Shown in pieces: positions 11,340 to 25,875 of a DNA stretch of 64,000 nucleotides. Positions within the stretch are counted from its first letter, which is position 1, and each line of letters starts with the position of its first letter. Under the pieces are notes generated by a model. That model was not told the DNA's origin and did no database searches. It worked only from the letters and a program-made list of their open reading frames with translations. Position numbers and translations under genes: made by a program. The DNA is taken from positions 1 to 64,000 of the IMG/VR virus record IMGVR_UViG_3300017991_005548. One strand, given 5' to 3'.

Positions 11340-11345
11340 GTCATA

Positions 11346-11417: not shown

Positions 11418-11445
11418 ATCTTACTTAAATTTTCAAAGATCATTC

Positions 11446-11520
11446 TGGAGCATCCAATCGGACTCGAACCGATAACCCCCTCCTTACCATGGAGGAATTC
11501 TACCATTGAACTATGGATGC
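11446..11520 (-). tRNA. tRNA-Thr(GGU)
   Basis: GCATCCA/TGGATGC acceptor; CCTCC-ATGGTAA-GGAGG; TCCA end. Confidence 0.9.
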
Positions 11521-11786: not shown

Positions 11787-12995
11787 TTATGGACAAGTCT
11801 CGTTTCCAACAGTAGGAACGTATGATGGCGCACCTTTCCATCCTGCCCAAGTATCAGTTCCAACACCATTAGCTTGGAGTGCATCCCACTTAATGGTCAA
11901 ATTACCATATGACCCCAAACTAGAAGCATCAAATGTAACGAATGTAAAACTGCTATTGGGAATAACTGTGGTTGAAGTTAGTGTACCTACATAAACTCCA
12001 GCAGAAATCCTGTTGTTATATTGAGAGTTTGTTCCCAAATTGATCCATACATGATGGTAAATATTGCTTCTTAAATAACAAGCAACTTTTTGAAATGTGG
12101 AATAAGATCCGCCAATTCTTAATTGCATTGATCCATTATAAGTGTTATTCCAAGATTCTGCTGGACTATTGCTATACGTACCTGGACATATTATTTTTGA
12201 TTCTCCATTGTACCATGAGACGAATCCTGTCCCATCATGCAACCAGTTAATGCTGTTTGCCGTTCCAGTCCAACAAAGAGTAACTTTCATTCTAGGATCT
12301 GAATTCCCCCCACACATAATTTTGGGCAATGGAGGTCCATCACTTTCTGAAGAACTTGAGGAACTATCTGGAGGTAAACCAGAACTGGAAGATTCAGAGT
12401 ATGAACTCTCAGAGTATGAACTGGAAGATTCAGAGTATGAAGATTCAGAATATGAACTGGATGATTCAGAATATGAACTTTCGGAGTATGAACTGCTAGA
12501 CTCTGAAGAATTGCACCCTCCTTCACATACTTCTATTACTTCTCCCTCTGTGTAATTTAGATATGCTCCTGGAGTTGCTAAGACAATTGCATCCTCACTA
12601 CCCCAATTTGTATAAGTCCCTTCATCAAATCCATTAATACAGACAGTTCCCTCTGAGATATTGCCAAAAAGAGTTGGTGGAGAAAACCAAAGGGTATTTT
12701 TAACTTCTGATATCCCACCAATTGTTACGTTAACACATTCAATAGAGCTTGAAGAAGATGGTGCGGCCAAAGATTCTGAAGAAGATGATCCTCCACCAAA
12801 AGACTCTGAAGATTCAGACAAAAGGCTCTCGGAGGAAGAGCTTGCGAGTTCACAAGCCAAACAGGAATCAAAAGTACCCTCAATCTCAAATGGGAAAGCA
12901 TTTCTTGGTTTTGTTGTTTCACCAGAGAATTTGTAACATTGACCATCTATCTTTATAGATGATCCTTGATAATCATCAAATACTTTGCTTGACAT
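11787..12995 (-). CDS. Cys-module family protein with Ser/Tyr repeat linker
   Basis: N-terminal DYQGSSIKIDGQCY...FDSCLACEL module; SYSESS(S) repeats; middle Cys-bounded domain shared with 23521..24087. Confidence 0.8.
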   Translation of the reverse strand: MSSKVFDDYQGSSIKIDGQCYKFSGETTKPRNAFPFEIEGTFDSCLACELASSSSESLLSESSESFGGGSSSSESLAAPSSSSSIECVNVTIGGISEVKNTLWFSPPTLFGNISEGTVCINGFDEGTYTNWGSEDAIVLATPGAYLNYTEGEVIEVCEGGCNSSESSSSYSESSYSESSSSYSESSYSESSSSYSESSYSESSSSGLPPDSSSSSSESDGPPLPKIMCGGNSDPRMKVTLCWTGTANSINWLHDGTGFVSWYNGESKIICPGTYSNSPAESWNNTYNGSMQLRIGGSYSTFQKVACYLRSNIYHHVWINLGTNSQYNNRISAGVYVGTLTSTTVIPNSSFTFVTFDASSLGSYGNLTIKWDALQANGVGTDTWAGWKGAPSYVPTVGNETCP

Positions 12996-13060
12996 AATTG
13001 GGATTCCAGCACATTTTGTTTCGAAATATTTTTCTTTGTGCTATACCCAAATACCTGCAA

Positions 13061-13252
13061 TTATTTTTTGGATCGTTCCCTATTTAACGACTCTCTAAGG
13101 GAATAAGTGTCGAAGGCCATGACCGAAATCATTTCAAGCATTACTTGATCCAAAGGCTTATAGCCACCTTTATACAATTTTAGTAAACTCTCTACGTGAT
13201 AATTATGTTTGGCGATTCTCTCCAATTCCCCTAACAGCTTCCTCTTCCTCAT
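13061..13252 (-). CDS. Hypothetical protein
   Basis: 63 aa ORF overlapping the upstream gene. Confidence 0.5.
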   Translation of the reverse strand: MRKRKLLGELERIAKHNYHVESLLKLYKGGYKPLDQVMLEMISVMAFDTYSLRESLNRERSKK

Positions 13253-13652
13253 TTGTACCAGCCATTAGTTTAATCCTTTTCTTTGTTTTCTCGATAACGT
13301 CAGCAAACTTTGAACCCCCAAAAGGGCAATAGTGACATTCCATGTCTTTATTCCTCATTTCCCTCATCATAACCTTTGCTCCACGCAAATTTAATGAGTG
13401 AACAATGATAGATAATTTCTTATTTGGAGTCTCATGAAGTCGTCTTGCAACAGTAGCCCCAGTATTAAATTCATCACTATCTACATACTGTCTTCCCTCA
13501 AGATCATGATCTAGGAAAATATAGTCATACTTATTGGTATTTAGCCACTCCATTGCAAGGTCAACTTGGTCAGTAATGTCTAACTGACATGGTAAATGCT
13601 CTCTAAAAATTGCGATTCTTCTTGGGTCATCTTCCAGGATAAAAACTCTCAT
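13203..13652 (-). CDS. Receiver-fold protein of the cyclic-phosphate-processing receiver type
   Basis: ILEDD...IFLDHDL...TG...IIVHSLNxxG motif pattern. Confidence 0.65.
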   Translation of the reverse strand: MRVFILEDDPRRIAIFREHLPCQLDITDQVDLAMEWLNTNKYDYIFLDHDLEGRQYVDSDEFNTGATVARRLHETPNKKLSIIVHSLNLRGAKVMMREMRNKDMECHYCPFGGSKFADVIEKTKKRIKLMAGTNEEEEAVRGIGENRQT

Positions 13653-14047
13653 TGTATCTCCTTTATGAATTCTTCATCTTCCATTAATTCATCCATTGCT
13701 TTTTCGACCTTATCTGCCGTTTTCTCCAACAGAAACTCTCTAAGCAAAGGTATGGCCATTATAAAATATAAAACGCCATACTTTCCAAATTGCCATTTAT
13801 GATGCAATTCATGGGCGACAACACTCACGAGCATCTCTGGAGCATCTTTCCCATAATGAATTAGGTTTATCTCTGATGGTTTCTTCCAATCAAAACTGCC
13901 TAATATACCATTATTAGCATCATATTTCTCATTCCAATATATCTTCACACCTGAAGGGTCAGCAATTGGGTAAGGCAACCTGTCTTTGGCCTTAGAAATA
14001 ATTTTTACGAAATATTCTTGTTCCTTTTGAGTTAGTTCTTGTTTCAT
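13649..14047 (-). CDS. Putative zinc metallopeptidase-like protein
   Basis: VAHELHHKWQ (HExxH) with downstream ExxA. Confidence 0.55.
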   Translation of the reverse strand: MKQELTQKEQEYFVKIISKAKDRLPYPIADPSGVKIYWNEKYDANNGILGSFDWKKPSEINLIHYGKDAPEMLVSVVAHELHHKWQFGKYGVLYFIMAIPLLREFLLEKTADKVEKAMDELMEDEEFIKEIQ

Positions 14048-14078
14048 TCCCCGAACCCCCTATAAATTCTCTAATACT

Positions 14079-14106
14079 ATTATAACTTCAAAAATACATA
14101 TTCCAA
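14079..14106 (-). promoter_or_regulatory. sigma70-type promoter
   Basis: TTGGAA-N16-TATAAT upstream of 14047. Confidence 0.55.
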
Positions 14107-14116
14107 GAGCCACAAC

Positions 14117-14145
14117 AAAAAAGACCATAGATACCTATGGTCTTT
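14117..14145 (-). terminator. Intrinsic terminator
   Basis: GACCATAG/CTATGGTC stem followed by U6. Confidence 0.7.
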
Positions 14146-14163
14146 AAATTAGTGTTTTATTGA

Positions 14164-14191
14164 TAGAGTTTAGAGTTTAGAGTTTAGAGTT
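14164..14191. repeat. Heptanucleotide tandem repeat (TAGAGTT)x4
   Basis: Seen directly; overlaps the stop of 14184..14450. Confidence 0.85.
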
Positions 14192-14450
14192 TAGAATCTC
14201 TAAGGGCTGTAAGGGCATCAATCCTACCTTGCATTAAAGTGATTCTGTCATTTAACTGTTCAACCGTCAATTGACTTAATTGAGCCTGTCTAATAATTGG
14301 TCTGATGACTTGAGCAGTATATTTGGCGATCAAATCTCTTCTTACTCTACCAGGCTTTTCATCAGGATAATCGTTTGTAACGATGTCCTGTAAAGTTCTT
14401 CCGCCTTCAAGTTTAGTTTTTACATCTTCAAGTTGAGTATCATTTAACAT
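14184..14450 (-). CDS. Hypothetical protein with C-terminal coiled-coil-like segment
   Basis: 88 aa ORF, GAGGA SD. Confidence 0.7.
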   Translation of the reverse strand: MLNDTQLEDVKTKLEGGRTLQDIVTNDYPDEKPGRVRRDLIAKYTAQVIRPIIRQAQLSQLTVEQLNDRITLMQGRIDALTALRDSKL

Positions 14451-14523
14451 TTTTAATCCTCTAATTTTGAATTTTGATTAATATTTTTGTTTCTAATTAT
14501 ACAAAGAAAATCCTTTATGAATT

Positions 14524-15510
14524 TTATGGTGGACTACTCTTATATGGATGTCCAGTTGGTAAACTTCCTTCTTGGCCCCACTTCCAAGCGAGATATCCCT
14601 CAACCTCTTGACGCTCTGTGTTTGTTAGTGCCTTTCTATAAACAAGAACCTCTGCATAATCTGCTTGCATGAAGTTACTATATCCCTCATTCAGTGCGCC
14701 CAAGGTAAGTGTAGAGCTATAGTTCGGAATAGATGTGCTAGTTTCTGTACTTGTTTTACTTAAGCTACCGTCCACATACAATTTTGATCTTTGAGAAGCG
14801 ATCAAAGATCCGTCAAATACTGTTTCCATCATATAAACCGTTCCACTACTGAAAGTTTGAGGATCGGAATCCCACCTATCCCCAATACCGTTAATATCGA
14901 TATATACATAACTATCATTCCAATAGAACATGCCATAAGCGTATTCCCCGAATTCGCCAAAACCAGTGCGCTTAGCGATAATGCCATCTGGATCTCCACT
15001 TAAAGTTGGTTTTAGCATTACCAATATTGTTAATCCTGAAGTTCCGTCTAAAGTGTCATCGTCTGGAACAACCAATATGTCTGAAACTCCATCAAATCTA
15101 ACGACATATTTTCCATCTAAGGCATTTGAGACATATGTGGGTTGATCAGTACCCGTACCTTGAGCCGCATGGTTTTCATTCCCTGATTTATCGTCCCATT
15201 GACTAACGAATCCTCCTGATTCAGTAATCGTATCAGAGTCGTCTGCATCAAGCCACAGAACTAAATTTGATATATCGGACGGCATAAATCCATCTGAACT
15301 CGAAGAACTACTTGAAGATACGTTGTTGAAACTTTCAGAGCTTTCTGAAGAACTTGATTCTAGAGCACACTCTAGACAAGAATCAAAAGTTCCACCTACT
15401 TCAGATGGATCAGTATCAACTGGGGCCAAGGTTTCTCCTACAAAAAGATAACATTCTCCATTTATTTTAATTGAAAGCCCTTGGTAATCTTGTAAAATCT
15501 TATCTGCCAT
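14524..15510 (-). CDS. Cys-module + poly-Ser + LamG/concanavalin-A-like domain (array copy 6)
   Basis: LWLDA...VSQWDDKSGN...FDG...EGYLAWKWG pattern typical of phage LamG-like fibre domains. Confidence 0.8.
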   Translation of the reverse strand: MADKILQDYQGLSIKINGECYLFVGETLAPVDTDPSEVGGTFDSCLECALESSSSESSESFNNVSSSSSSSSDGFMPSDISNLVLWLDADDSDTITESGGFVSQWDDKSGNENHAAQGTGTDQPTYVSNALDGKYVVRFDGVSDILVVPDDDTLDGTSGLTILVMLKPTLSGDPDGIIAKRTGFGEFGEYAYGMFYWNDSYVYIDINGIGDRWDSDPQTFSSGTVYMMETVFDGSLIASQRSKLYVDGSLSKTSTETSTSIPNYSSTLTLGALNEGYSNFMQADYAEVLVYRKALTNTERQEVEGYLAWKWGQEGSLPTGHPYKSSPP

Positions 15511-16469
15511 TATGGTGCCGCTCCTTTGTATGGATGTGTTAACGGTAAATTATCTTCTAGCCCCCATTTCCAAGCAAGATAGCCTTCTAATTTTTGTCTG
15601 GTGTCAGTTGTTATATCGTTCTCAATAACGATTATCTCGCAAATGTATCCATCCAAACGTTCGGTTGCTCTGTCAGCGACTCCCATTCCTTGAGAAGCGG
15701 TATTTGAAGTATTTCCTGCGGTTTGAAATGCTGTTGGCCCAGAAAGCGTTCCGTCATAAGTCGAATATACTTGTGCATTAGCCCAATCTGCAATAGAAAC
15801 AAACATATGTGGGTCTGTATCGGTTGTTTGCCAAAAAATTTCTAAATAGGAATCACTATCTAATCTTCTACCAGCAGTACCCAGGTCTCCAGCTTCAACC
15901 TGATGCTTTAATCTTGTGGAACCACTATTCTGATAAACCTCAAATAGAATATTTGTCCCAGTAATAACATCCTTCTTGTGAACAGTTAAAATCATAGCAG
16001 AAGGAACGTTTTGTAGATAAGCACCCGACCCGATAGCAATACTGTCATCTCCATCAAAGTCTATTACATTTAAGCCATTTTGCGTTGTGGCACCAGTAGT
16101 TGGCTGTTCGGCACCAGTTCCTTGAGTTAAATGATAATCATTTCCTGATTTATCATCCCATTGACTAACACTCCCTCCAGAATCAGTAATGGTATCTGTA
16201 TCAGCCGCATCATACCAACCTAGCAATGTCAATTCTGCTGGGGTGAAACCTCTACTTGATGAGCTACTTGATGAAGATACATTGTTAAAACTTTCAGAAC
16301 TTTCTGAAGAGCTAGATTCTAAAGCACACTCTAAACAAGAATCGTAAGTTCCACCTATCTCTGAAGGGTCAGTGTCAACTGGAGCAGTCGTTTCCCCTAC
16401 AAAAAGATAACATTCTCCATTTATCTTTATTGAAGGTCCCTGATATTGTTGTAAAATTTTATCTTCCAT
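15510..16469 (-). CDS. Cys-module + poly-Ser + LamG-like domain (copy 5)
   Basis: Same motif pattern; TAATG stop/start overlap. Confidence 0.8.
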   Translation of the reverse strand: MEDKILQQYQGPSIKINGECYLFVGETTAPVDTDPSEIGGTYDSCLECALESSSSESSESFNNVSSSSSSSSRGFTPAELTLLGWYDAADTDTITDSGGSVSQWDDKSGNDYHLTQGTGAEQPTTGATTQNGLNVIDFDGDDSIAIGSGAYLQNVPSAMILTVHKKDVITGTNILFEVYQNSGSTRLKHQVEAGDLGTAGRRLDSDSYLEIFWQTTDTDPHMFVSIADWANAQVYSTYDGTLSGPTAFQTAGNTSNTASQGMGVADRATERLDGYICEIIVIENDITTDTRQKLEGYLAWKWGLEDNLPLTHPYKGAAP

Positions 16470-17434
16470 TATGGTGGCGCTCCTTTATATGGATGATCTG
16501 ATGGTAAATTATCTTCTAGACTCCATTTCCAGGCCAAATAACCTTCGAGTTTTTGTCTTGTATCCAAAGTCTCGTCTTCAACAACTATTAACTCCCCAAT
16601 AGCTCCATCAAAACGTTTATTTCCTCCCCCAACATCTCCATCCCCGATCTCAAATAACTGAGTTGTATCATTGGGAATAGAAGTTGGGTTCGTTTGAACA
16701 GACTCAGCTTGCTCAACCCCATTCACAAAACATCTAGCATCTCCATATGTCCCACCCTGAGGTCTTGTCATTACAGTTATGGTAGGGGTACTAAGAGTTA
16801 CTGGTGTATATTTGTCATTACCATTATTATATCTCCAAGCCCATCCATCAGAACCAACAGACACCTTAATTGAATTTGTGACATTTCCACTAAAACCACA
16901 CCAACGATCATCTGAAGTTACACTACTATCAACCACTATGACTACGGCAATCATAACATCAGGGTTAGCTCCAAGACCAAGTCTTGAATTTATAGATAAT
17001 TCTTTTTGTGGGAAATCTAGAATATTTAACCCATTTATATTTCTTGTTCCTGTAATTGGTTGATCTGATCCGCTTCCTTGAGTTACATCATAATTATTCC
17101 CAGACTTGTCGTCCCATTGACTTACATTTCCACCTGAATCCGTTATGGTGTCAGAATCTGTTGCGTCCCACCAACCAACAGGACTGACATCTAATGGATT
17201 AAACCCTCTACTTGATGAAGAACTGCTAGAAGAAACATTATTAAAACTCTCCGAACTGTCTGAGGAACTAGAAGTACTTGATTCCAATGTACACTCAAGA
17301 CAAGAGTCAAAAACCCCACCTATTTCAGATGGATCTGCATTAATTGCTTCAGTTGTCTCTTCAACAAATAAATAGCATTGTCCATCTATCTTAACTGAAG
17401 CCCCCTGATAATCTTGAAATATCTTAACTGACAT
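16469..17434 (-). CDS. Cys-module + poly-Ser + LamG-like domain (copy 4)
   Basis: Start revised to MSVKIFQ at 17434 by paralog alignment and TAATG overlap. Confidence 0.8.
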   Translation of the reverse strand: MSVKIFQDYQGASVKIDGQCYLFVEETTEAINADPSEIGGVFDSCLECTLESSTSSSSDSSESFNNVSSSSSSSSRGFNPLDVSPVGWWDATDSDTITDSGGNVSQWDDKSGNNYDVTQGSGSDQPITGTRNINGLNILDFPQKELSINSRLGLGANPDVMIAVVIVVDSSVTSDDRWCGFSGNVTNSIKVSVGSDGWAWRYNNGNDKYTPVTLSTPTITVMTRPQGGTYGDARCFVNGVEQAESVQTNPTSIPNDTTQLFEIGDGDVGGGNKRFDGAIGELIVVEDETLDTRQKLEGYLAWKWSLEDNLPSDHPYKGAPP

Positions 17435-18315
17435 TATGGAACCCACTTATTATTCAAATAATTAATCACAGTATCTTGCTCAGAACTTGTCAAATCTTCG
17501 TTATAGAAAATCAATTCGCAAAGAGCCATTTTTAAATACCTAACATTCCCTGAGATAGGATCACCACCTATACGGATGTTGTTATAAACTGATCCTGCAA
17601 TTGTTGAACCTCTCTGAAACTTAGAAACTTGTATCTGATCAAAAGTAAAACTAGCTGATGCAACTCCATTAACTTCAAAATCACCATCTGTATAACAAAA
17701 ATCATTGGCATCATTTGTTGGTCTCCAAGCCGCAACAGTTCCACTAGCTAGTCGAATGTTACCTCTATCGCCTGCATTTGAGACCAAACCACTACAACAT
17801 CCAGTATTTGGCTGACCAGACTTTACAATGACTGCCGCAAAGACCCACTCCATATCTGTAACATTAATAGAATTCCTTTGCAGAAAATCATTTGAACCAT
17901 CAAAAGTTAAAGTGTTAAGATTATTTTGAGTTTCCAATTCTGTTTGAGGCTGATTCGACCCAGTTCCCTGAGTTACATGGAAATTGTTTCCTGATTTATC
18001 ATCCCATTGACTAACAAATCCACCTGAATCGGTTATAGTGTCCGTATCAGATGCGTCATACCACAAAGACAAGCCTGGGATATCATATGGGAAGAAGCCA
18101 CTTGATGACGAACTGGAAGAAGAAGTATTTCCTATGCTTTCAGAACTGTCTGAAGAACTTGATTCTAGAGCACACTCTAAACACGAACTAAAAGTCCCAC
18201 CTACCTCTGATGGATCGGTATCTACTGGAGCAGTTGTTTCTCCTACAAAAAGATAACACTCTCCGTTTATCTTAATTGAAGGACCTTGATATTCTTGTAA
18301 GATTTTATCATCCAT
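17434..18315 (-). CDS. Cys-module + poly-Ser + LamG-like domain (copy 3)
   Basis: Start revised to MDDKILQ at 18315; TAATG overlap. Confidence 0.8.
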   Translation of the reverse strand: MDDKILQEYQGPSIKINGECYLFVGETTAPVDTDPSEVGGTFSSCLECALESSSSDSSESIGNTSSSSSSSSGFFPYDIPGLSLWYDASDTDTITDSGGFVSQWDDKSGNNFHVTQGTGSNQPQTELETQNNLNTLTFDGSNDFLQRNSINVTDMEWVFAAVIVKSGQPNTGCCSGLVSNAGDRGNIRLASGTVAAWRPTNDANDFCYTDGDFEVNGVASASFTFDQIQVSKFQRGSTIAGSVYNNIRIGGDPISGNVRYLKMALCELIFYNEDLTSSEQDTVINYLNNKWVP

Positions 18316-19181
18316 TATATGCCCCACTTATCAGACAAATAATCTTCCACTTGTAATCTCTCACTAGTCGTTAAAGCTCTATTGTATATTATTATTTCTC
18401 CAATATCACCATTAAAAGTCTCCCCAATACGCAAACTATAATTAGATGGGTTGGCAAAATCATTTGTTGTTAAGTCGCTGAACTGGGAGGTTCCATTCAT
18501 CCAAACATTCTGGCCAACACCATCTTCATTCCTCATGGTAAAATAATTCCAGTTATTACCTCCAGTCCAAGACCACTGACACCTTCCTCCAGCACTCCAT
18601 TCTCCAAAATCGAAATACCCATCACCAGTACTCCACGTCAAGTGACATCCAATTCTATTTACTTCTCTTGGATTTGAAAAAATTGGATAGCTTGCTGTAG
18701 TTACGCTTCTTTTCTGAACGATGAACATTGTTATATCATCTTGAGGCCATGTATATGGATCTTTATCCATGTAATCTCCCCCATCCCATCTAATAATATT
18801 ATTGCCATTTTGAACATTTGTTTGATAGGTTGGTTGTAACGAACCAGTCCCTTGAGTAACATCATTGTCATTACCTGATTTGTCATCCCATTGACTAACA
18901 CTGCCAGAGGATTCTGTTATGGTATTAGAATCAGCCGCGTCAAGCCACAATTGAATGTCTGCAATATCATATGGGAAGAAACCACTCGAACTGGAAGAAG
19001 AACTTGAATCCAACGAACTTGATGAACTTTCTAGAGTACACTCCAAACAAGAATCATAGGTCCCTCCAATCTCAGATGGGTCAGCATTAATACTTTCAGT
19101 TGTTTCCTCAACAAATATATAACACTGCCCATCGATTTTAACAGAAAAGCCTTGATAATTTTGAAATATCTTAACTGACAT
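18315..19181 (-). CDS. Cys-module + poly-Ser + LamG-like domain (copy 2)
   Basis: Start revised to MSVKIFQ at 19181; TGATG overlap. Confidence 0.8.
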   Translation of the reverse strand: MSVKIFQNYQGFSVKIDGQCYIFVEETTESINADPSEIGGTYDSCLECTLESSSSSLDSSSSSSSSGFFPYDIADIQLWLDAADSNTITESSGSVSQWDDKSGNDNDVTQGTGSLQPTYQTNVQNGNNIIRWDGGDYMDKDPYTWPQDDITMFIVQKRSVTTASYPIFSNPREVNRIGCHLTWSTGDGYFDFGEWSAGGRCQWSWTGGNNWNYFTMRNEDGVGQNVWMNGTSQFSDLTTNDFANPSNYSLRIGETFNGDIGEIIIYNRALTTSERLQVEDYLSDKWGI

Positions 19182-20104
19182 CAGATTCCCCACTTATCCA
19201 TTAAATAATTTTCAACAGTAATTCTTTCACCATCTGTTAAATCTCTATCATAAATAACAACTTCTCCACAATAGAACCTGGCATAAGCATTGTTCCCTCG
19301 ATTAACTCCTAATCTAATTCTACTTGAAAAAAGACTAAAAGTATCATTTCTAGTTGAGCCTGTTTGACTACCGTTTAAAAAGGCTTTTTGTTGAGATCCT
19401 GTATTCCAAGCTGTAAAAAGATATCTAGTATTATTAACTGGACTTCCATATGTTATCTGCCTTTGAGTTGTGGTAGCATCATGATATCTATAGTCCATAT
19501 TAGCTGACCCTGCAAAACTTAACTGTAATGCTCCAGCAAAATTAAATACATTATGACTACTATATATACCATCATTAGTGTCAAATGGAGAGAACGCAGT
19601 AACAGCCATAAAAATTGTAAATGCTCCTGATGGACTTGCAGATAAGTTTTCCATATCATCATCAACTCCATCAAAAAACATACAGCCAAGGCCATTAAAA
19701 CCAGAAGAAAGATATTGAGGTTGTTTGGTTCCAGTCCCTTGAGTTAAATCCCACCCTCCAGTCCATTTGTCATCAATTTGGGAAATAGATCCTGCTGACT
19801 CTGTAATCGTATTAGAATCTGATGCATCATACCAAGCATAAAGGTTGTTGATGTCATATGGGTAGAAACCACTTGAGGAAGAGCTACTGGAAGAAACATT
19901 ATTGAAACTCTCAGAACTTTCCGAAGAACTAGAAGTACTTGAAGAACTAGACTCTAATTCACATTGAAGACAAGAGTCGTAAATTCCACCAATCTCAGAT
20001 GGGTCAGCATTAATTGCTTCGGTAGTTTCCTCAACGAATATATAACACTGCCCATCGATTTTAACAGAAGAGCCTTGGTAATCTTGAAATATCTTGACTG
20101 ACAT
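19181..20104 (-). CDS. Cys-module + poly-Ser + LamG-like domain (copy 1)
   Basis: Same N-terminal module; AWYDA...FDG...ENYLMDKWG. Confidence 0.8.
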   Translation of the reverse strand: MSVKIFQDYQGSSVKIDGQCYIFVEETTEAINADPSEIGGIYDSCLQCELESSSSSTSSSSESSESFNNVSSSSSSSSGFYPYDINNLYAWYDASDSNTITESAGSISQIDDKWTGGWDLTQGTGTKQPQYLSSGFNGLGCMFFDGVDDDMENLSASPSGAFTIFMAVTAFSPFDTNDGIYSSHNVFNFAGALQLSFAGSANMDYRYHDATTTQRQITYGSPVNNTRYLFTAWNTGSQQKAFLNGSQTGSTRNDTFSLFSSRIRLGVNRGNNAYARFYCGEVVIYDRDLTDGERITVENYLMDKWGI

Positions 20105-20146
20105 TAGTATAAAAAGTTTTGATTGTCTCGATATTTATTTCAAGAT

Positions 20147-20864
20147 TTACCCTCTTAACCCCTTGCTGATTTTGGAATACTCATCATAGATCAGGTTCAA
20201 TTTCCCTTTCATAATATCTTGGGGTCTGAACTTTTTCTTTATTCTTTCGTCCTTAACTCTACTCTCAATGAAATTATAGGTTCTAACCCTGGTCCCTCTG
20301 CCCATGTCTCCTATTTGCTCTCTACGTTTATTATTATGATCGTTATGGTCCTTTGCGCCTTGCATGGCGTTAATACGGCTAGTAACGACTGAGAGAGCTA
20401 TTTGACGGTTTCTGTGCTGATTCTTGGTATTGGCGCAAGCAGATATGCCAGTAGGCTTATGAGTTATCTTGACATTAGAGGCAGTTCTATTCCTATGTTG
20501 ACCACCAGGACCTCCACCACAGAAACATTCAATTTCGAAATCAGCCATATTTAACTGATATTCGTAACATTCTGTGTATGGAAGAACTGCAACAGCAATA
20601 GTAGAGGTATGTCGTCTACCTTTTGACTCTGTGGGGGGACACCTCTGAACGCGATGTATGCCGCTTTCTAAAGAGAACTTATTGGTGAGATTTTTGCCTG
20701 ACAACAGGAATGAATATGAAGAAACAGAATGGCTAAAGACAATCCATGGAGATGTCTTCTGCCTTACAATACCCTTGGTACATTTTTACCATGTCTACTA
20801 AGAAAAGTTTGGAGTCTTCTCCACCTTCTCCAGCTTTGAGTTCGAGTACAATTTGTTCTTTCAT
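20147..20864 (-). CDS. prfA: Peptide chain release factor 1-like protein lacking domain 1, requiring a +1 frameshift at CTT-TAG-C (join 20864..20736, 20734..20147; 238 aa)
   Basis: ORF1 (AGGAGG SD, 43 aa) IVLELKAGEGGEDS matches RF1 ILEIRAGTGGDEA; the +1 frame gives ESGIHRVQRCPPTESKGRRHTS (PxT), GPGGQH and RTYNF. Confidence 0.85.
20732..20738 (-). promoter_or_regulatory. Putative programmed +1 frameshift site CUU-UAG-C
   Basis: Analogue of the prfB CUU-UGA-C site; RF1 homology switches frame here. Confidence 0.75.
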
Positions 20865-20891
20865 AATAAACCTCCTGAGGTTACAACGATC

Positions 20892-20919
20892 ATTATACCA
20901 TTTATTATAGGAAAATCAA
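20892..20919 (-). promoter_or_regulatory. sigma70-type promoter of the release-factor gene
   Basis: TTGATT-N16-TATAAT with extended -10 TG. Confidence 0.65.
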
Positions 20920-20920
20920 G

Positions 20921-21322
20921 TTATTCTGTTAGATCTGTTAATTTGAACTGAGGGCTGTTTACACTTGCTTGTAAAGGCTCGACTGGAGTTATATTATCTT
21001 CTAATTCTTCTTTTGTTGCACCAATTATTTGAAGAACCTCTCCATCAATATTGTCTACATCAAACTTTCTATAGCTAATTTTGGTCATTTCATCTCCATC
21101 AAAAACAGCGTATGGATAGACAATTTGTGGGTGATCCTCTCCATTTAGTCTCATATTCATTAATTGAGATTCCAAATCAGGATCATCTAAATGAATTCGA
21201 ATAAATTCTTTATCTTCTTGAATTCCCCAAGGTGAATCATCAAGTTTAACTATAATAATATCTCCTTTCTCGTGAACCCCATGTAGACTAAATCCATTAT
21301 TTACAAGTGCTATTAATGCCAT
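20921..21322 (-). CDS. Hypothetical protein
   Basis: 133 aa ORF, AGGAG SD. Confidence 0.7.
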   Translation of the reverse strand: MALIALVNNGFSLHGVHEKGDIIIVKLDDSPWGIQEDKEFIRIHLDDPDLESQLMNMRLNGEDHPQIVYPYAVFDGDEMTKISYRKFDVDNIDGEVLQIIGATKEELEDNITPVEPLQASVNSPQFKLTDLTE

Positions 21323-21332
21323 ATTATTTCTC

Positions 21333-22493
21333 CTATGTGTTTAATTCAAATGCTCCAATATCTGGAGGATCTTTTCTAGTTGTTCCAAGTATATCTGTCT
21401 CTACTCCAGAAATAGCTATCCCAGCCGCATAGATGTCAGCACTAGAATTTTTAACACTATGATCAGACCCAACTGTCGTCCATTGATCGGAGCTGGATTT
21501 ACTTATTAAATTACCACTTCCCAACCAAGAATTCGCTGTGGTATCAGAAGAACAACAATAGTCAACATTTTCTGTAATAATTCCAAGTGTGTAAAAATCA
21601 TCCCCACCATTATCCATACTAATGTTGTTCTGGCAATTCCAATCAACAGTGACATCATTTAAGGTGCGGATGTAAAAACCTCTTGTTCCATAGTTGTAAA
21701 TAGAATTATTATATGTATTAAGAGTGTAGTTATATGTGCCATCATTCTCATAAAGTTGAAATGCTACTGCACCATCTCTTGTTTCACTTCCCGAACAATA
21801 GAATGAATTATTGATAATATTAAATACACCATCTACGTTATAGACATTAATAAATATACAAAATGCGCTATTAGCTCCCTGTAATTGGAATACGCAGTTC
21901 TTAACTGTCAAATGATTCGCATGACCTTCACCTTGAGCAAACAATGTGGTAGCAAATGTATTTGTCCCGATTACTCTCATTCCATCAATTTCTACATATG
22001 GGTCAACAATTGTAAATACACTACCACTTGAAGAACAATACGCCCCATTGAGGGCAGTTGTTCCATCATGTTTGTGGCCATCTGCTGGAGCTATTTTTAG
22101 ATGATTATTCTCATCTTGATTAGTGCCTCCACTAATTACACATGTTCCTGCGTTAAACCCTGAATCAACTAAGCCGAGAACGACACCTCTGTCCGTAAAG
22201 TCTGTATTTCTAGCCGCTTCAAATGCGGCTAATGAAGAATAATCTCCATCGATGTTTTTTATTGTATAAACTTCTGGATCTCCAAATGATGAAGTAGAGC
22301 TAGATTCCGAATAAGCTTCAGATGATGATGAAGAACTGGATTCTAATTTACATTCCAAACAAGAGTCGTAAGTTCCACCTATAACACTTGGGTCTGTATT
22401 AAATGGTTGAGTCGTTTCTCCAATAAATTTATAACAAACATCATTTATTTTAATAGATGCTCCTTGATAATCATCAAATATTTTATTTGCCAT
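21333..22493 (-). CDS. Cys-module + poly-Ser + right-handed beta-helix (pectin-lyase-like) domain
   Basis: Shared N-module; Asn-ladder repeats (IINNSFY, TYNNSIY, CQNNIS); C-terminal DIxGxxR..PDIGAFE. Confidence 0.7.
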   Translation of the reverse strand: MANKIFDDYQGASIKINDVCYKFIGETTQPFNTDPSVIGGTYDSCLECKLESSSSSSSEAYSESSSTSSFGDPEVYTIKNIDGDYSSLAAFEAARNTDFTDRGVVLGLVDSGFNAGTCVISGGTNQDENNHLKIAPADGHKHDGTTALNGAYCSSSGSVFTIVDPYVEIDGMRVIGTNTFATTLFAQGEGHANHLTVKNCVFQLQGANSAFCIFINVYNVDGVFNIINNSFYCSGSETRDGAVAFQLYENDGTYNYTLNTYNNSIYNYGTRGFYIRTLNDVTVDWNCQNNISMDNGGDDFYTLGIITENVDYCCSSDTTANSWLGSGNLISKSSSDQWTTVGSDHSVKNSSADIYAAGIAISGVETDILGTTRKDPPDIGAFELNT

Positions 22494-22508
22494 AATTTAC
22501 TCTTTTCT

Positions 22509-23012
22509 TTATGGATAATTGGTAGGCAATAAATTCCCATAAAAAGTTACTGTTGGAGCATAAGCAACTTCTACCAAATCACCTACTTCCACATCAAAAG
22601 GTACAGATTGAGTTTTTGATCGTACTCCTCCACCTCTATACTCTTCAACATTATTGATTTTAATGCTACAAGTGTAACCAAGGTTACCAGTATGCCAAAC
22701 TCTCAAAACTCCATCTCTTGGGACAGAATCTATTAATGTTGAATATGTCCCACCAACTCCAGTTTTATAGAAATAATTCTCGCTAAGATAATATGCGACT
22801 GCATGTTCTATTGCAGTTAATGTAGTTCTACCTTGACTGTCTGCTGTTATATATGCAGAATAACCTGATATATTGTCATAGATCACAGAACTTAAACTAG
22901 CATCTTTAGGAGTTCCATCTGTTTTAGTTCCAACATACTCAAAAGCTTTTTGAGTTCCTTGGTCATTTATGACAATAGCAGAGCCAACATAAGAATAATA
23001 ATGTTTACTCAT
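22509..23012 (-). CDS. Hypothetical fibre-like protein, paralog of 23027..23509
   Basis: Shared RVWHTGNxGYT and VEVAYAPTVTFYGxxLPxNYP. Confidence 0.7.
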   Translation of the reverse strand: MSKHYYSYVGSAIVINDQGTQKAFEYVGTKTDGTPKDASLSSVIYDNISGYSAYITADSQGRTTLTAIEHAVAYYLSENYFYKTGVGGTYSTLIDSVPRDGVLRVWHTGNLGYTCSIKINNVEEYRGGGVRSKTQSVPFDVEVGDLVEVAYAPTVTFYGNLLPTNYP

Positions 23013-23026
23013 AATTCACCTCATTG

Positions 23027-23509
23027 TTATGGATAATTAAATGGCAATATAACGCCATAAAAAGTTACTGTTGGAGCATAAGCAACTTCTACTGAAGCGC
23101 CTTCCGCAACATTAAAGCCTCTCGACAAAGTAAAAGATTTTGCATGTGATGATGCATATATTTGCGATCCGTTAACAACTACTCGCATTGTATATCCAGC
23201 GTTACCAGTATGCCAAATCCTCATAACTCCCTCTGCGGGAGCACTAGACCATAAAGTACTTAAACTGCCAGTAACACCACTGACAGAAGCGTAATTGGTA
23301 AACGCCAACAAATACTCTGCCCCATCATAGTCTGATTTCCCCTGTGGATCTGCATATGTAAATATAGACCCATTAGATGTTCCTGTCACTCCTGATGGGT
23401 ATGCACTAGGCACTCCTGTTGTTTGACCAATACGTTCAAGGTATACAACCTCATCCCCAATATCATACGAGACTCCATCTCCTTGATCTGATGTAAAATA
23501 ATAACTCAT
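23027..23509 (-). CDS. Hypothetical fibre-like protein, paralog of 22509..23012
   Basis: Same shared motifs; GGAG SD. Confidence 0.7.
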   Translation of the reverse strand: MSYYFTSDQGDGVSYDIGDEVVYLERIGQTTGVPSAYPSGVTGTSNGSIFTYADPQGKSDYDGAEYLLAFTNYASVSGVTGSLSTLWSSAPAEGVMRIWHTGNAGYTMRVVVNGSQIYASSHAKSFTLSRGFNVAEGASVEVAYAPTVTFYGVILPFNYP

Positions 23510-23520
23510 AACTTTACTCC

Positions 23521-24087
23521 TTAAAAAGATCCTTGTTGATATTCATAAACTGTTGGGGTTACATCAATAGATTTTTGGTTATATTCCCAAACATTTTGTG
23601 GGAAGCAAGCCTCTTCACAAACATCAACAACTTGGTCTTCTGAGAAATTCTGATAAGCAAGTGGAGCGTCAAGAGTGATGATGTCTTCTGCTCCATAGTT
23701 TCTGTAATGACCACTGTAAATCGCATCTATACAAACAGGTCCTTCGTTAATGACCCCTAAAAATGGGGGTGGTGAGAACTGCAATCCATTTATGTTTTCA
23801 AGTACATGTTGAATAGTACCATTAGTACACTCATAAGAACTTGAAGACGATTCATTACCAACAGATTCTGAAGATGAACTTTCTGCTCCAATAGATTCAG
23901 ATGATTCTGACAATGAACTTTCAGATGAAGAACTATCTAAAGCACATTCCAAACATGAATCAAAAACTTCTTCGATTTCAATTGGATAAGAATTAATAGG
24001 TTTTACGGTTTCACCGATCCATTTATAACAAACACCATTAATCTTAATGGATGCTCCTTGATAATCGTCAAATATTTTATTCGCCAT
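23521..24087 (-). CDS. Cys-module + poly-Ser + small Cys-bounded domain
   Basis: Shared N-module; FSPP...EGxVCI...GxEDxIxL...VxxVCExxC domain also in 11787..12995. Confidence 0.75.
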   Translation of the reverse strand: MANKIFDDYQGASIKINGVCYKWIGETVKPINSYPIEIEEVFDSCLECALDSSSSESSLSESSESIGAESSSSESVGNESSSSSYECTNGTIQHVLENINGLQFSPPPFLGVINEGPVCIDAIYSGHYRNYGAEDIITLDAPLAYQNFSEDQVVDVCEEACFPQNVWEYNQKSIDVTPTVYEYQQGSF

Positions 24088-24097
24088 AATTTACTCC

Positions 24098-25516
24098 TTA
24101 AACTGCTCCACCATCATAAACTGCTCCCCATTCTGATCCAATTGCAGTTCTCCCTGCTTCAGCGGCACCTCCCGCAGTGTATTTACTGTTGCCGAACGTT
24201 GGGATTCCTGCGGCAGGTTTTAACGATTGACCTCCCCATGAAATCAGAAGTGCATCATAGTTAGCAGTAGACAGGGCATCGTAAGGAGTGCCACGAGCTA
24301 TTTCTGCCATGAACTCATGTATTACTGTGACGTTAGAAACATCCCAGTTGCTGAGGTCTTGGTCAAAATTAGGTTGGAACCTAATGGCTTGTTGAATATC
24401 AGTAACGCTTGATGTATCCCACACCCCTATCGGCTGATTGAATACGCCTCTACTGGCTAAAGTTGCACCTAGCATATTTGCCAGTGTTGTCACGTTACCC
24501 ATGTTTGTAAAGTTTTGGATCGCGCCATTGAATAAAGGACAAGTATTAAACATACCTGAGCAGTCAGTGACACTATTCATGTCCCAGTTCCAATTTGCGC
24601 TTGCGCCTGTCATTCCAGTACATCCTGCGAACATCCATGAACAATCCGAACACGCCGACAAATCAGGCACATCAGATGCGGTGATTTCAAGGCCACTACA
24701 ACTCGAAAATGCGTTAGCCATCTGAGGCCACTGATACGTTCCCCACTGTCGAATTTCTTTGAGCTTTGATGCATATCCCCATCCTGAAATCCAACCAGAA
24801 GAAGAAGAGAAGTCAACAGACATTTCATACTCGGTATCTGCGTCAGGATAGATATGTTCGATTATAAATCCACCAGTAACCGTTTGTTGGTTTCCATCAC
24901 CCCAATCAATATATGTTGTGTTAGGGTTACCTATGTAAATTTGAACTGTTTTATTCTCTCCTGAATCCCACAATGCTTTAAAAAGATCACCCTCAGGGTA
25001 AGAACTGCTTGACGAACTTGAAGTTGAACATGGATCATCACAAACCTCTACAACTTGTCCAACCGAATACTTACTTGCCGCACCTGGCTCAACTAAAGAA
25101 ATACCAATCCAAAGACCAACATTTATCTCTCCAATATCATTTCCATTTACACAAACAAAACCTGAAAAAGTATTTAATGGAGAAGTTGATTCAAAGCCTA
25201 ATACATTTCCTACAATGGTTAATATTGAAACAGTGGCACAACCTTCTGAACTTGATGAAGAAACATTTTCTTCACTTTCTGAAGAATTGGAACTAGAAGA
25301 ACTGCTAACATTACCAATTGATTCAGAAGATGATGATTGAGTACTTTCTGATGAACTTGATTCAATAGCACATTCGAGACAATTATCAAAAACTTCTTCT
25401 ATTTCGCTTGGGCTTGAATTAACAGAACTAGTTGTTTCACCGATCCATTTATAACAAACCCCACCTATTTTAATTGATGCTCCTTGATAATCGTCAAATA
25501 TTTTTTCTCTACCCAT
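24098..25516 (-). CDS. Cys-module + poly-Ser + PKD-like + BspA/DUF285 leucine-rich repeat protein
   Basis: YIDWGDG; FNQPIGVWDTSSVT, FDQDLSNWDVSNVT repeats; LSTANYDALLISW. Confidence 0.8.
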   Translation of the reverse strand: MGREKIFDDYQGASIKIGGVCYKWIGETTSSVNSSPSEIEEVFDNCLECAIESSSSESTQSSSSESIGNVSSSSSSNSSESEENVSSSSSEGCATVSILTIVGNVLGFESTSPLNTFSGFVCVNGNDIGEINVGLWIGISLVEPGAASKYSVGQVVEVCDDPCSTSSSSSSSYPEGDLFKALWDSGENKTVQIYIGNPNTTYIDWGDGNQQTVTGGFIIEHIYPDADTEYEMSVDFSSSSGWISGWGYASKLKEIRQWGTYQWPQMANAFSSCSGLEITASDVPDLSACSDCSWMFAGCTGMTGASANWNWDMNSVTDCSGMFNTCPLFNGAIQNFTNMGNVTTLANMLGATLASRGVFNQPIGVWDTSSVTDIQQAIRFQPNFDQDLSNWDVSNVTVIHEFMAEIARGTPYDALSTANYDALLISWGGQSLKPAAGIPTFGNSKYTAGGAAEAGRTAIGSEWGAVYDGGAV

Positions 25517-25591: not shown

Positions 25592-25673
25592 TGGTATGGG
25601 GGGTGGGACTTGAACCCACAGAAATTCACTTGTTTATAAGACAAGCCGCTTAACCAAATTTGCGTACCCCCAC
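25592..25673 (-). tRNA. tRNA-Ile(UAU)
   Basis: CTTGT-CTTATAA-ACAAG anticodon arm; GTGGG-TTCAAGT-CCCAC; ACCA end; 9-nt variable region. Confidence 0.8.
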
Positions 25674-25689
25674 ACAGGTAAGAAGTTTT

Positions 25690-25796
25690 GGGGAGGTGGG
25701 GAGGCTCACTGGGGTAAGTGGCTTCTTATTATATTGCCGTCCATTGTGTCAGCCCGTTCTCCTTCTAACGGGTGTTTCCGATGACATGGCATCCCC
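25690..25796 (-). ncRNA. GC-rich structured RNA of unknown class inside the tRNA operon
   Basis: Nested pairings GGGGA/TCCCC, CCAT/ATGG, TGTCA/TGACA, CCCGTT/AACGGG; abuts tRNA-Val. Confidence 0.5.
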
Positions 25797-25798
25797 TT

Positions 25799-25875
25799 TG
25801 GTGGGCAGTACAGGACTCGAACCTGTCACGACCTCGGTGTAAACGAGGCATTCTAGCCAAATGAATTAACTGCCC
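25799..25875 (-). tRNA. tRNA-Val(UAC)
   Basis: CCTCG-TTTACAC-CGAGG; ACCA end. Confidence 0.9.

Follow-up and report, generated by a model that had tools for sequence, protein, structure and literature searches.

A three-cysteine head module on poly-serine stalks in a roughly half-megabase tailed phage and its predicted docking on peptides of large poly-serine scaffold proteins

Ten neighbouring genes in a 64,000-nucleotide stretch of IMG/VR record IMGVR_UViG_3300017991_005548 (positions 1 to 64,000, hereafter the window) encode proteins that seem to begin with the same small cysteine-containing segment, followed by a serine tract and by very different C-terminal domains, which raises the question of what the shared segment is for. 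A sequence-only reading had proposed that it is a common docking adaptor, through metal binding or a disulfide, that plugs diverse adhesin or lectin tips onto one virion scaffold as a combinatorial receptor-binding or decoration system. The window lies in a tailed phage, and the 296-kb record is cut from a contig of about 476-524 kb.

To confirm that the shared segment is real, the ten genes were re-examined and aligned. All ten exist on the minus strand with ATG starts, and although automated ORF calling extends three of them to upstream GTGs, the alignment and the 1-nt TAATG/TGATG stop/start overlaps favour the ATGs. The first 50-55 residues align without gaps, with 75% mean column identity and invariant C20, C45 and C48. 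A profile built from these sequences (module A) scored each copy at E 1e-33 to 1e-36 against all ORFs of the genome, while unrelated ORFs scored above 0.01, which is far beyond chance. The related copy that had been noticed after the protease domain of ORF 3810-7037 was weak with this narrow profile (E 2.5e-4) but clear with a 106-sequence family profile (E 1.6e-11). The Ser tract after every module was confirmed. No hydrophobic N-terminal segment was found by a crude test (maximum Kyte-Doolittle 12-residue mean of 1.3 or less), in line with the claimed absence of signal peptides. The observation itself was thus confirmed, though with corrections. The family is larger than ten, since the 296-kb record has 17 N-terminal copies and the 476-kb sibling record has 19 plus the internal protease copy. 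The “small Cys-bounded domain” listed among the tips (about 75 aa, module B) is mostly a second stalk element lying between two Ser linkers, and is terminal in only one window gene, 23521-24087. The features are collected in Table 1.

Table 1 Coordinates of module-bearing genes, scaffold peptides and related features (window positions unless stated otherwise)
Position	Strand	Feature	Support
11787..12995	-	Module A (12831-12995), poly-Ser, module B (12513-12737), poly-Ser, C-terminal Cys-containing “domain D” (11790-12323)	Alignment and profile; domain D recurs at the C-terminus of island proteins and of relatives
14524..15510	-	Module A (15346-15510), poly-Ser, LamG tip	PF13385 at 1.3e-10 (42 bits, above the 27.6 cutoff); phrog_10356 “virion structural protein” at 8.4e-35
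15510..16469	-	Module A (16305-16469), poly-Ser, LamG-type tip	Alignable with the Pfam-positive paralogues; 1-nt stop/start overlap
16469..17434	-	Module A (17270-17434), poly-Ser, LamG-type tip	As for 15510..16469
17434..18315	-	Module A (18151-18315), poly-Ser, LamG-type tip	As for 15510..16469
18315..19181	-	Module A (19017-19181), poly-Ser, LamG-type tip	As for 15510..16469
19181..20104	-	Module A (19940-20104), poly-Ser, LamG tip	PF13385 at 6.9e-5 (23.5 bits, below the cutoff); alignable
21333..22493	-	Module A (22329-22493), poly-Ser, right-handed parallel beta-helix tip (21336-22286)	ESM Atlas features 0.96, TM 0.67-0.86
23521..24087	-	Module A (23923-24087), poly-Ser, module B (23605-23829), short tail	First sequence of the module alignment, so the copy that was modelled
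24098..25516	-	Module A (25346-25516), poly-Ser, module B (25028-25240), poly-Ser, DUF285/BspA-like tip (within 24104-24991)	PF03382 at 6.2e-25
4680..4829	-	Internal module A (residues 737-786) in ORF 3810-7037, directly after the serine-protease domain and before a poly-Ser tract	Family profile; protease phrog_20754 at 3.4e-36
1..3798	-	5' part of a giant poly-Ser scaffold ORF running off the left edge of the window; continues in stretch L003, 1-5349	2350 aa by the ENA gene call; eight islands in the sibling record
880..942	-	Cys island 1 inside the poly-Ser stalk (core N-V-N-F-E-Y-A-L-C-D-L-F-T-E-S-I-S-S); predicted docking peptide for module A	Residues 5-15 of the island peptide (844-945, minus strand) form the predicted interface
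268..330	-	Cys island 2 inside the same stalk	
22509..23012	-	167-aa ORF whose N-terminus resembles module A without the cysteines; no Ser linker; membership weak	Resemblance by eye; narrow profile E 0.95, not significant
23027..23509	-	160-aa paralogue of the previous ORF	Narrow profile E 1.6, not significant
88323-88805 (genome)		Third paralogue of these ORFs, outside the window	Narrow profile E 0.017; family profile E 0.044
174627-180860 (genome)		Tape-measure gene	phrog_167 at 6e-18
160646-163003 (genome)		Island protein	Fifth gene downstream of the tape measure
158494-160632 (genome)		Module gene	Sixth gene downstream of the tape measure

We next asked whether the module corresponds to anything already described, since a match to a known domain of unrelated function had been named beforehand as a result that would tell against the adaptor reading. 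No match was found in Pfam, NCBIfam, the PDB, PHROGs or 50,697 GenBank phages. Among 1.84 billion representative proteins only 100 hits were obtained, about 90 of them real, and 88 of 122 domains lie at the very N-terminus and are nearly always followed by a Ser-rich linker. AlphaFold2 modelled the module confidently (pLDDT 92) as a beta-hairpin carrying C20, one more strand, and a helix that starts with C45-x-x-C48, and structural matches in the Atlas went only to unnamed Uroviricota clusters. At about 50 aa, with a hairpin plus a C-terminal helix and C-x-x-C at the first turn of the helix, the predicted fold recalls the second half of a treble clef, as in treble-clef or zinc-ribbon mini-domains, but only three Cys are present in cis. 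The weak best structural neighbours were the Kunitz domains BPTI and Ixolaris, and neither Foldseek (E 6.9, TM 0.38) nor VIA-align (Z 2.2) gave a significant result.

Since the genes are tandem paralogues in two inverted clusters, the similarity might be only a by-product of recent duplication or gene conversion. This reading is contradicted by the substitution pattern. The mean pairwise nucleotide identity of the module is 68%, synonymous sites are near saturation (mean pS 0.66) against a pN of 0.23, and even the closest pair has pS 0.39-0.52 with pN 0.05-0.10. In addition, the family occurs in unrelated phages from other samples. The paralogues are old and under purifying selection, and among the six LamG paralogues the module is 72-85% identical while the LamG core is only 9-26% identical.

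The tips are diverse and resemble known fibre tips. All six LamG-type domains are alignable, although PF13385 passes its threshold in only one, and the beta-helix is tailspike-like. The claimed BspA-like part of 24098-25516 was supported, whereas its PKD part was not confirmed. Other family members carry an FG-GAP propeller or domain D and, in relatives, an M10 peptidase.

To place the family in the phage gene order, we examined the surroundings of module genes in this genome and in three small siphovirus-like contigs of independent phages (L028, L033 and L034). In all four, module-bearing genes sit 3-6 genes downstream of the tape-measure gene. In L028 the order is TMP_3, genes for 318 aa and 336 aa, a 434-aa island protein (see below) and two module genes, and in L033 it is capsid, further genes, TMP_2, genes for 315 aa and 353 aa, a 349-aa protein with three islands and two module genes, with conserved Dit-like and Tal-like genes preceding the module genes in both. 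In L034, TMP_3 is followed by two genes and then by the 1040-aa protein P0067 with an internal module. However, the ten window genes themselves lie more than 130 kb from the tail module, among tRNA, release-factor and glycosyltransferase genes, and they abut a 25-kb block of GT2, GT4-like, sulfotransferase, methyltransferase and MptE-like genes. Sulfotransferases also recur beside module genes in contigs L024/L025 and L035. Given that the module nearly always directly precedes a Ser-rich linker, it might instead be a recognition handle for an intracellular process, such as recruiting the neighbouring glycosyl- or sulfotransferases to the Ser tract, or for export to the infected cell surface. 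We consider this very unlikely, because most poly-Ser tracts in this genome lack the module, there is no signal peptide or hydrophobic segment, and the tail-tip synteny in the small contigs is hard to reconcile with a non-structural role, though the two roles are not mutually exclusive.

A further element emerged when the poly-Ser stalks of large proteins were inspected. These stalks contain a conserved Cys-bearing segment of about 20 aa, here called the island (consensus N-x-[YFW]-x-Y-x-x-C-[DE]-L-F-T-E-S-I-S), often encoded next to module genes. In the 296 kb, six of the seven Cys residues lying in Ser-rich context are islands, and Y(-3), C and F-T-E-S-I-S are invariant despite synonymous codon changes. 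Ser-flanked Y-x-x-C islands also occur next to module genes in L028, L033 and contig L026, and within protein P0031 of L024, and islands lie next to module genes in four lineages. By contrast, about 12 islands face 19-20 modules per genome, and no island was seen in the examined parts of L005 or in the 15 kb examined of L035, which has three module genes. Relatives with tandem repeats of the module have an N-[YW]-x-Y-x-x-C junction a few residues after each C-x-x-C, and the island resembles this junction strand, which supplies a fourth Cys. L026 shows an intermediate in which an 11-aa Ser linker separates the two.

Given this resemblance, a complex of module A with the island was predicted. 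The ipSAE was 0.66, 0.16 and 0.66 in three runs, with a best control of 0.36, and the result was scored as supporting binding, a mark reached by 58 of 80 solved complexes and by 2 of 110 mismatched pairs. The predicted interface covers module residues 1, 3-10, 13-14, 19-31, 45-46 and 48-49, including C20, C45, C48 and most conserved residues, and island residues 5-15, including the Tyr and the Cys. Nevertheless, one run scored low, one control reached 0.36, the most conserved island segment (F-T-E-S-I-S) lies outside the confident interface, and the model may simply be completing a domain it knows from cis-repeat relatives. It remains possible, though doubtful, that module A is a virion-docking adaptor whose site is not the island, binding a baseplate or distal-tail protein directly or other module A copies homotypically (for example the tandem arrays or the internal protease copy), while the islands act as protease or modification sites or as stalk hinges. 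The tail-module synteny, which holds regardless of the islands, the Dit-like and Tal-like neighbours, the absence of islands in the examined part of L035 and the position of F-T-E-S-I-S outside the predicted interface fit this view, whereas the controlled prediction, the adjacency of islands to module genes and their resemblance to the cis junction strand speak against it.

Alternatively, the module may be no docking device but a small stable bead or cap, possibly a metal-stabilised mini-domain, that starts or punctuates low-complexity stalks, or may itself be a ligand-binding unit. In favour of this, relatives carry 3-7 tandem internal copies (P0031, P0047, P0099 and L026 1165-3444), the protease copy sits between a catalytic domain and a Ser tract, and some members are only module plus poly-Ser, such as L028 9608-9997 (129 aa). 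We regard it as unlikely, since a cap would not need such identity across paralogues whose synonymous sites are saturated, it would not explain an invariant third Cys after the cis partner Cys was lost, many poly-Ser tracts in the genome have no module, and the conserved residues form one predicted surface that contacts the island.

Taken together, our preferred but tentative explanation is that module A is the attachment end of a family of phage tail appendage proteins, each with a small folded three-Cys head, a flexible poly-Ser stalk and an exchangeable binding or enzymatic tip. In this view the head docks on islands spaced along a few very large poly-Ser scaffold proteins, and the island supplies in trans the strand and the fourth Cys that tandem-repeat relatives supply in cis. 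Docking would therefore complete a four-Cys cluster, either a shared metal site or an intermolecular disulfide, in a split “catcher/tag” arrangement, and the outcome would be a cellulosome-like brush of about twenty different tips on the tail, an undescribed way of building a multi-receptor phage surface. The family, its copy number and selection pattern, its tail-module synteny, and the existence, conservation and gene adjacency of the islands were established here, whereas the module-island contact rests on prediction only, and presence in the virion, the Cys chemistry and glycan binding by the tips are inferred. The interpretation in the sequence-only reading was thus partly supported: the evidence points to a shared adaptor for tips on the virion, but incorporation into particles is only inferred, the “one virion scaffold” becomes several poly-Ser scaffold proteins carrying short peptide sites, and the module, which in relatives also occurs internally and in tandem arrays, is not intrinsically an N-terminal adaptor.

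Phages with multiple receptor-binding proteins, such as the branched tailspike systems of CBA120, G7C and Klebsiella phage PhiK64-1, and the P22 tailspike head-binding domain, likewise show paralogous proteins with a conserved N-terminal part and exchangeable C-terminal binding or enzymatic domains, genes downstream of the tape measure and a beta-helix among the tips. The present family has no sequence or fold similarity to any known anchor domain in our searches, its connector is a long disordered poly-Ser tract rather than a trimeric shaft, the proposed site is a peptide of about 20 aa repeated along a stalk rather than a folded adaptor domain, and about 20 paralogues is an unusually large number. 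The proposed arrangement shares with cellulosome cohesin-dockerin assembly scaffolds with multiple docking sites separated by Ser/Thr-rich linkers, many catalytic or binding subunits each with one small docking module, and combinatorial display. However, the module is not a duplicated EF-hand Ca-binding dockerin, the site is not a cohesin beta-sandwich of about 150 aa, no Pfam dockerin or cohesin hits were found, and the system is phage-encoded without secretion signals. In donor-strand complementation of chaperone-usher pili, SpyTag/SpyCatcher, the CD4/CD8-Lck zinc clasp and the Rad50 zinc hook, a strand and/or a ligand residue missing from one partner is supplied by a short peptide of the other, as proposed here with cysteines from two chains completing one cluster, but this is an analogy only, without homology and with the metal or disulfide hypothetical.

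The tips are also found apart from the module. The same beta-helix as in 21333-22493 occurs without module A in L003 5859-8453, and the same LamG type is fused to a conventional fibre-like N-terminus in a TARA jumbo phage.

To define the genomic setting of the module genes, the record was compared with overlapping assemblies. The window is the first 64 kb of a 296,327-bp IMG/VR record. This record is an artificial cut, since its left 'provirus' boundary falls inside a giant poly-Ser ORF that continues in an ENA contig of 523,871 bp (L003; window position x corresponds to L003 position 1999-x), and it does not mark a prophage edge. The window's own proteins are recorded on a contig of 524,692 bp, and a near-identical IMG/VR record (the sibling record) is 476,248 bp long, so the phage genome is probably about 0.5 Mb. 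The samples are JGI sediment metagenomes 3300018080 and 3300017991 (PMC7449369 acknowledges D. Valentine for 3300018080), and the phage is uncultured. The element is a tailed phage, as it encodes a tape-measure protein (phrog_167, 6e-18) with a minor tail protein upstream (phrog_290). Genes are almost all on one strand, and eleven tRNA genes in two arrays (Lys x3, Thr x3, Ile, Val x2 and Ala x2) flank the module-gene cluster. The features discussed here are listed in the table.

Locations of module genes, islands and neighbouring features (window coordinates unless stated)
Location	Strand	Feature
1-3798; L003 1-5349	-	Giant poly-Ser scaffold ORF cut by the record boundary
268-330		Cys island in the giant ORF
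880-942		Cys island in the giant ORF
844-945	-	34-aa island segment used for complex prediction
3440-3798	-	M-G-C-A-D-F start and two ~55-aa repeats of the giant ORF
3810-7037	-	Protease ORF; internal module copy at residues 737-786
6720-7037	-	M-G-C-A-D-F start and two ~55-aa repeats of the protease ORF
9997-11520; 25592-26853		tRNA gene arrays
10087-10962	-	HTH plus DUF559/REase-like ORF
11787-12995	-	Module gene ending in domain D
13203-13652 (-); L005 823-1230		cREC-type receiver domain
14524-20104	-	Array of six LamG genes
14524-15510	-	LamG gene above the PF13385 cutoff
19181-20104	-	LamG gene below the PF13385 cutoff
20147-20704	-	Release-factor-like ORF
20921-21322 (-); L003 5364-5846		Small ORF family adjacent to the beta-helix gene
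23521-24087	-	Module gene used for single-sequence structure prediction
24098-25516	-	Module gene with DUF285/BspA-like tip
28009-53088 (-); genome 152257-153348; L024/L025; L035 12414-13238		Glycan-modification genes and sulfotransferases beside module genes
L003 8464-9996; L003 10001-11539		Two further module copies just left of the window
Genome 158494-160632		Module gene with FG-GAP propeller, near the tape measure
Genome 160646-163003		Island protein adjacent to the preceding gene
Genome 174627-180860		Tape-measure protein
Genome 261791-274621	-	4276-aa ORF with two islands
Genome 285767-288160		Island protein
L024 10001-14851		Tandem-module relatives P0031 and P0047
L026 1165-3444		Tandem-module relative
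L026 6370-9465		Island protein next to P0077
L036 6505-7506		LamG on a conventional fibre-like N-terminus

All ten minus-strand genes start exactly at the positions proposed in the sequence-only reading, and each begins with a ~50-aa module (module A) with the consensus M-x-x-K-I-F-D-D-Y-Q-G-x-S-I-K-I-N-G-x-C-Y ... D-S-C-L-E-C, a mean column identity of 75% and invariant C20, C45 and C48. A profile of the module found 17 N-terminal copies in the record at E 1e-22 to 1e-36, while the next unrelated ORFs scored above 0.01, and the sibling record has 19 N-terminal copies plus the copy in the protease ORF. With a 106-sequence family profile, this protease copy is unambiguous (E 1.6e-11). The observation of one module shared by ten genes is therefore confirmed and extended. 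A Ser tract follows every module, and downstream of it at least six tip types were found, including six LamG-type domains, a right-handed beta-helix, a DUF285/BspA-like domain (PF03382, 87.7 bits against a cutoff of 25) and, outside the window, an FG-GAP propeller. Among the six LamG genes, one matches PF13385 (Laminin_G_3) at 42 bits against a 27.6 cutoff and a second scores 23.5 bits, below the cutoff, while the other four are linked only by alignment to these two. The 'small Cys-bounded domain' claimed as a tip is a ~75-aa module B that usually sits between two Ser linkers, and a recurrent Cys-containing 'domain D' lies at the C-terminus of one window gene and of many relatives. None of the ten N-termini has a hydrophobic segment, and a secretion signal was rejected on this admittedly crude measure, in line with the claim that signal peptides are lacking.

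To determine whether the module is known, a profile search of 1.84 billion representative proteins was carried out. It returned 100 hits at E ≤ 1e-3, of which about 90 are genuine and none carries an informative name; 88 of 122 detected domains sit at the extreme N-terminus and are nearly always followed by a Ser-rich linker. A match to a domain of unrelated function had been named beforehand as grounds for rejecting the adaptor idea, but Pfam, PHROGs, NCBIfam and PDB sequence searches returned nothing for the module, nor for module B, domain D or the island proteins described below, and tblastn against 50,697 GenBank phages found no match. A search for related loci with the narrow module alignment found only the sibling record, ESM Atlas leads for domain D were uninformative, and literature searches found no description of this module or of poly-Ser phage appendages.

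The structure of the module was then predicted with AlphaFold2. A single-sequence model of a complete module protein gave pLDDT 35 and was discarded, whereas the family alignment gave a confident model of the module (pLDDT 92) with a hairpin at residues 13-16 and 19-22, a strand at 40-42 and a helix at 45-54. Foldseek and VIA-align (wide search) found no significant neighbour in the PDB, AFDB clusters or BFVD. The best matches were BPTI/Kunitz (TM 0.38 with E 6.9; Z 2.2), and since neither score is significant and Kunitz domains have six Cys forming three disulfides while the module has only three Cys, this resemblance was rejected as a family assignment. No homology to a described virion anchor, such as the P22 head-binding or T4 gp10-like domains, was detected in these sequence and fold searches. 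The ESM Atlas matched only unnamed Uroviricota clusters, at TM 0.62-0.71. The module is therefore an undescribed domain family, so far seen only in phage contexts.

Across the 17 copies, mean nucleotide identity is 68%, pS is 0.66 (near saturation) and pN is 0.23, and the closest pairs still have pS 0.39-0.53 with pN 0.05-0.11. These values contradict gene conversion as the cause of the conservation, an explanation that we regard as practically excluded. The six LamG genes form a translationally coupled array with 1-nt TAATG/TGATG stop/start overlaps, and conservation varies along their proteins: the module and linker are 72-85% identical, the LamG edge strands about 50-70%, and the LamG core only 9-26%, which suggests diversified ligand specificities. 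These are old paralogues with a constrained head and diversifying tips, a pattern typical of receptor-binding proteins.

In four independent phages, module-bearing genes lie just downstream of the tape-measure gene, a genomic context that points to the tail tip. In the genome studied here, the tape measure is followed by genes for proteins of 512, 907, 900, 1455 and 785 aa, the last being an island protein, and then by a 712-aa protein carrying module A, module B, FG-GAP and domain D, the sixth gene; the ten window copies themselves lie elsewhere in the genome. In L028 (a 35-kb contig of a MAG), a tail chaperone and TMP_3 are followed by proteins of 318, 336 and 434 aa (the last poly-Ser with islands) and then by module proteins of 129 and 522 aa. 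In L033 (a 25-kb contig), the order is HK97 capsid ... TMP_2, then 315, 353 and 349 aa (the last with three islands plus domain D), then module proteins of 325 and 283 aa. In L034, another phage contig, TMP_3 and two genes precede the 1040-aa P0067, which has an internal module next to a LamG-like end. PHROG and Pfam annotation of the genes between the tape measure and the module gene gave almost nothing, so Dit/Tal identities remain positional guesses. In addition, a TARA 324-kb phage scaffold (L036) carries the same LamG type on a conventional fibre-like N-terminus, together with module proteins.

The family also includes proteins with 3-7 tandem copies of the module (P0031, P0047, P0049, P0097, P0099 and one ORF of contig L026). 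That the module is only a structural bead or cap, or itself a ligand-binding unit, is possible but unlikely in our assessment. In these tandem relatives each C-x-x-C is followed after a few residues by N-[YW]-x-Y-x-x-C, which gives four Cys per unit, while the N-terminal type has lost this strand and has poly-Ser in its place. P0031 and P0047 also contain a G-D-P-H motif region reminiscent of autocleaving VWD-type domains, and P0047 ends in domain D. To find the missing strand, the genome was searched for the cis-type junction. A strict pattern returned nothing, but a relaxed one revealed a conserved ~20-aa peptide embedded in poly-Ser, here called an island, with the consensus S-T-E-N-[VI]-x-[YFW]-x-Y-x-x-C-[DEA]-[LE]-F-T-E-S-I-S-S.

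Islands occur in four large proteins that contain no module A: the giant ORF at the window edge (eight islands in the sibling record), the island protein adjacent to the tail-module copy of module A, the 4276-aa ORF and a fourth island protein. Y(-3), C and F-T-E-S-I-S are invariant while their codons vary synonymously, and of the seven Cys residues in Ser-rich context anywhere in the 296 kb, six are islands. Copy number of islands and repeats in the giant ORF differs between assemblies; over the stretch where L003 has four islands, the assembly L021 has five. The exact island DNA pattern occurs in IMG/VR only in the sibling record, and distant islands therefore had to be found by protein context. 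In this way, Ser-flanked Y-x-x-C islands were found in the genes directly upstream of module genes in L028 and L033, in a protein of L026 next to P0077, and within P0031. L026 also shows an intermediate form, in which the junction strand is separated from its own C-x-x-C by an 11-aa Ser linker.

Next, we asked whether the module could dock on an island by complex prediction, pairing the module (with our own family alignment) with a 34-aa island segment. Three runs gave ipSAE 0.66, 0.16 and 0.66 against a best control of 0.36, which supports binding but does not show it. This mark was reached by 58 of 80 solved complexes and by 2 of 110 mismatched pairs, counts that hold only roughly because our own alignment was used. 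The confident interface comprises module residues 1, 3-10, 13-14, 19-31, 45-46 and 48-49, covering the three Cys and most conserved positions, and island residues 5-15 (N-V-N-F-E-Y-A-L-C-D-L). However, one of the three runs failed, the F-T-E-S-I-S segment is not in the confident interface, and the model may be recalling the cis arrangement seen in relatives. Docking to another tail protein, or homotypic docking between modules, remains a less likely alternative.

Taken together, our analysis establishes the domain family with its copy number, selection pattern and tail synteny, as well as the existence, conservation and adjacency of the islands, whereas the module-island contact at the Cys face is a prediction, and presence in the virion, the Cys chemistry and the binding or cleavage of surface glycans by the tips are inferred. 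The interpretation of the module as a common adaptor plugging diverse tips onto one virion scaffold is thus partly supported. In the mechanism we propose, the heads would clip onto islands arrayed on poly-Ser scaffold proteins and complete a four-Cys cluster. In the model C45-x-x-C48 lies at the helix start and C20 in the hairpin, so that three potential ligands are present in cis and the fourth Cys exists only in tandem relatives or in the island, while the fold searches gave no structural match. C-x-x-C at the first turn of a helix is typical of treble-clef zinc sites, which draw four metal ligands from a knuckle plus the first turn of a helix. Because the proteins fold in the cytoplasm, a shared tetrathiolate metal site seems more likely than a disulfide, although both remain inferences.

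Such an arrangement would work like a cellulosome or a tag/catcher pair without belonging to those families. Dockerin is a duplicated Ca-binding EF-hand segment and cohesin a beta-sandwich domain, and no Dockerin or Cohesin Pfam hits were found in the module proteins or the protease ORF, while the proposed site is a 20-aa peptide. Both the protease ORF and the giant scaffold ORF begin with M-G-C-A-D-F and two ~55-aa repeats containing a D-x-D-G-N...I-N-D-V-R loop, which by eye resembles a dockerin Ca-binding loop, but again no Pfam dockerin hit was obtained. The principle of a conserved anchor with exchangeable tips is already known; what differs here is the undescribed domain and, possibly, a new split-domain docking mechanism. 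In its boldest form, which we consider possible but rather doubtful, about twenty tip proteins would each carry a three-Cys catcher module, giant poly-Ser scaffolds would carry arrays of up to eight one-Cys tag peptides, and the variable residues flanking the invariant Tyr and Cys of each tag could set which tip binds where, amounting to a programmable, cellulosome-like 'adhesosome' on a megaphage tail.

Huge phages are known almost only from metagenomes, and how they recognise hosts is largely unknown. This locus suggests that a roughly 0.5-Mb phage displays about twenty different lectin, adhesin and enzyme tips through one undescribed docking domain on flexible poly-Ser tethers, which would be a different architectural solution from rigid trimeric fibres. 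If the module-island pairing is real, it defines a new protein-peptide docking pair, small enough (50 aa plus 20 aa) to be useful as a laboratory assembly tag, gives a sequence signature for finding appendage proteins in uncultured phages, and offers a testable model for combinatorial host or particle adhesion. Even without the island hypothesis, the work defines a new domain family, seen so far only in phages, and annotates about 20 previously hypothetical genes.

Next to the cluster lies a glycan-modification island with GT2, GT4-like, sulfotransferase and methyltransferase genes and a weak MptE-like (Maf-type) hit, and sulfotransferases recur beside module genes in three other phage contigs. 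The Ser linkers contain recurrent acidic Tyr motifs of the form S-E-[EGNQ]-Y-S-[ED]-S-S, and we speculate that the stalks may be O-glycosylated and/or sulfated (mucin-like). That the module is instead a handle for intracellular modification or export is considered very unlikely. Thirty-four genes of the record carry poly-Ser tracts, and the 4276-aa ORF is mostly Ser repeats with small ~68-aa and ~84-aa folded domains interspersed. A small conserved ORF family lies adjacent to the beta-helix gene both in the window, immediately downstream of it, and in L003, immediately upstream of it, and in L003 the beta-helix protein lacks module A, which is direct evidence of module shuffling.

Other genes lie in or beside the cluster. 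A 185-aa class-I release-factor-like ORF in its middle carries the GGQ region (PF00472, 3e-25) plus the tail of PCRF, and an HTH plus DUF559/REase-like ORF, probably a homing-endonuclease-type nuclease, lies between the two left-hand tRNA groups. A stand-alone cREC-type receiver domain (PF20274, 2e-12) lies among the module genes, and the same family sits two genes upstream of two module genes (one gene between) on an unrelated 4-kb contig, L005.
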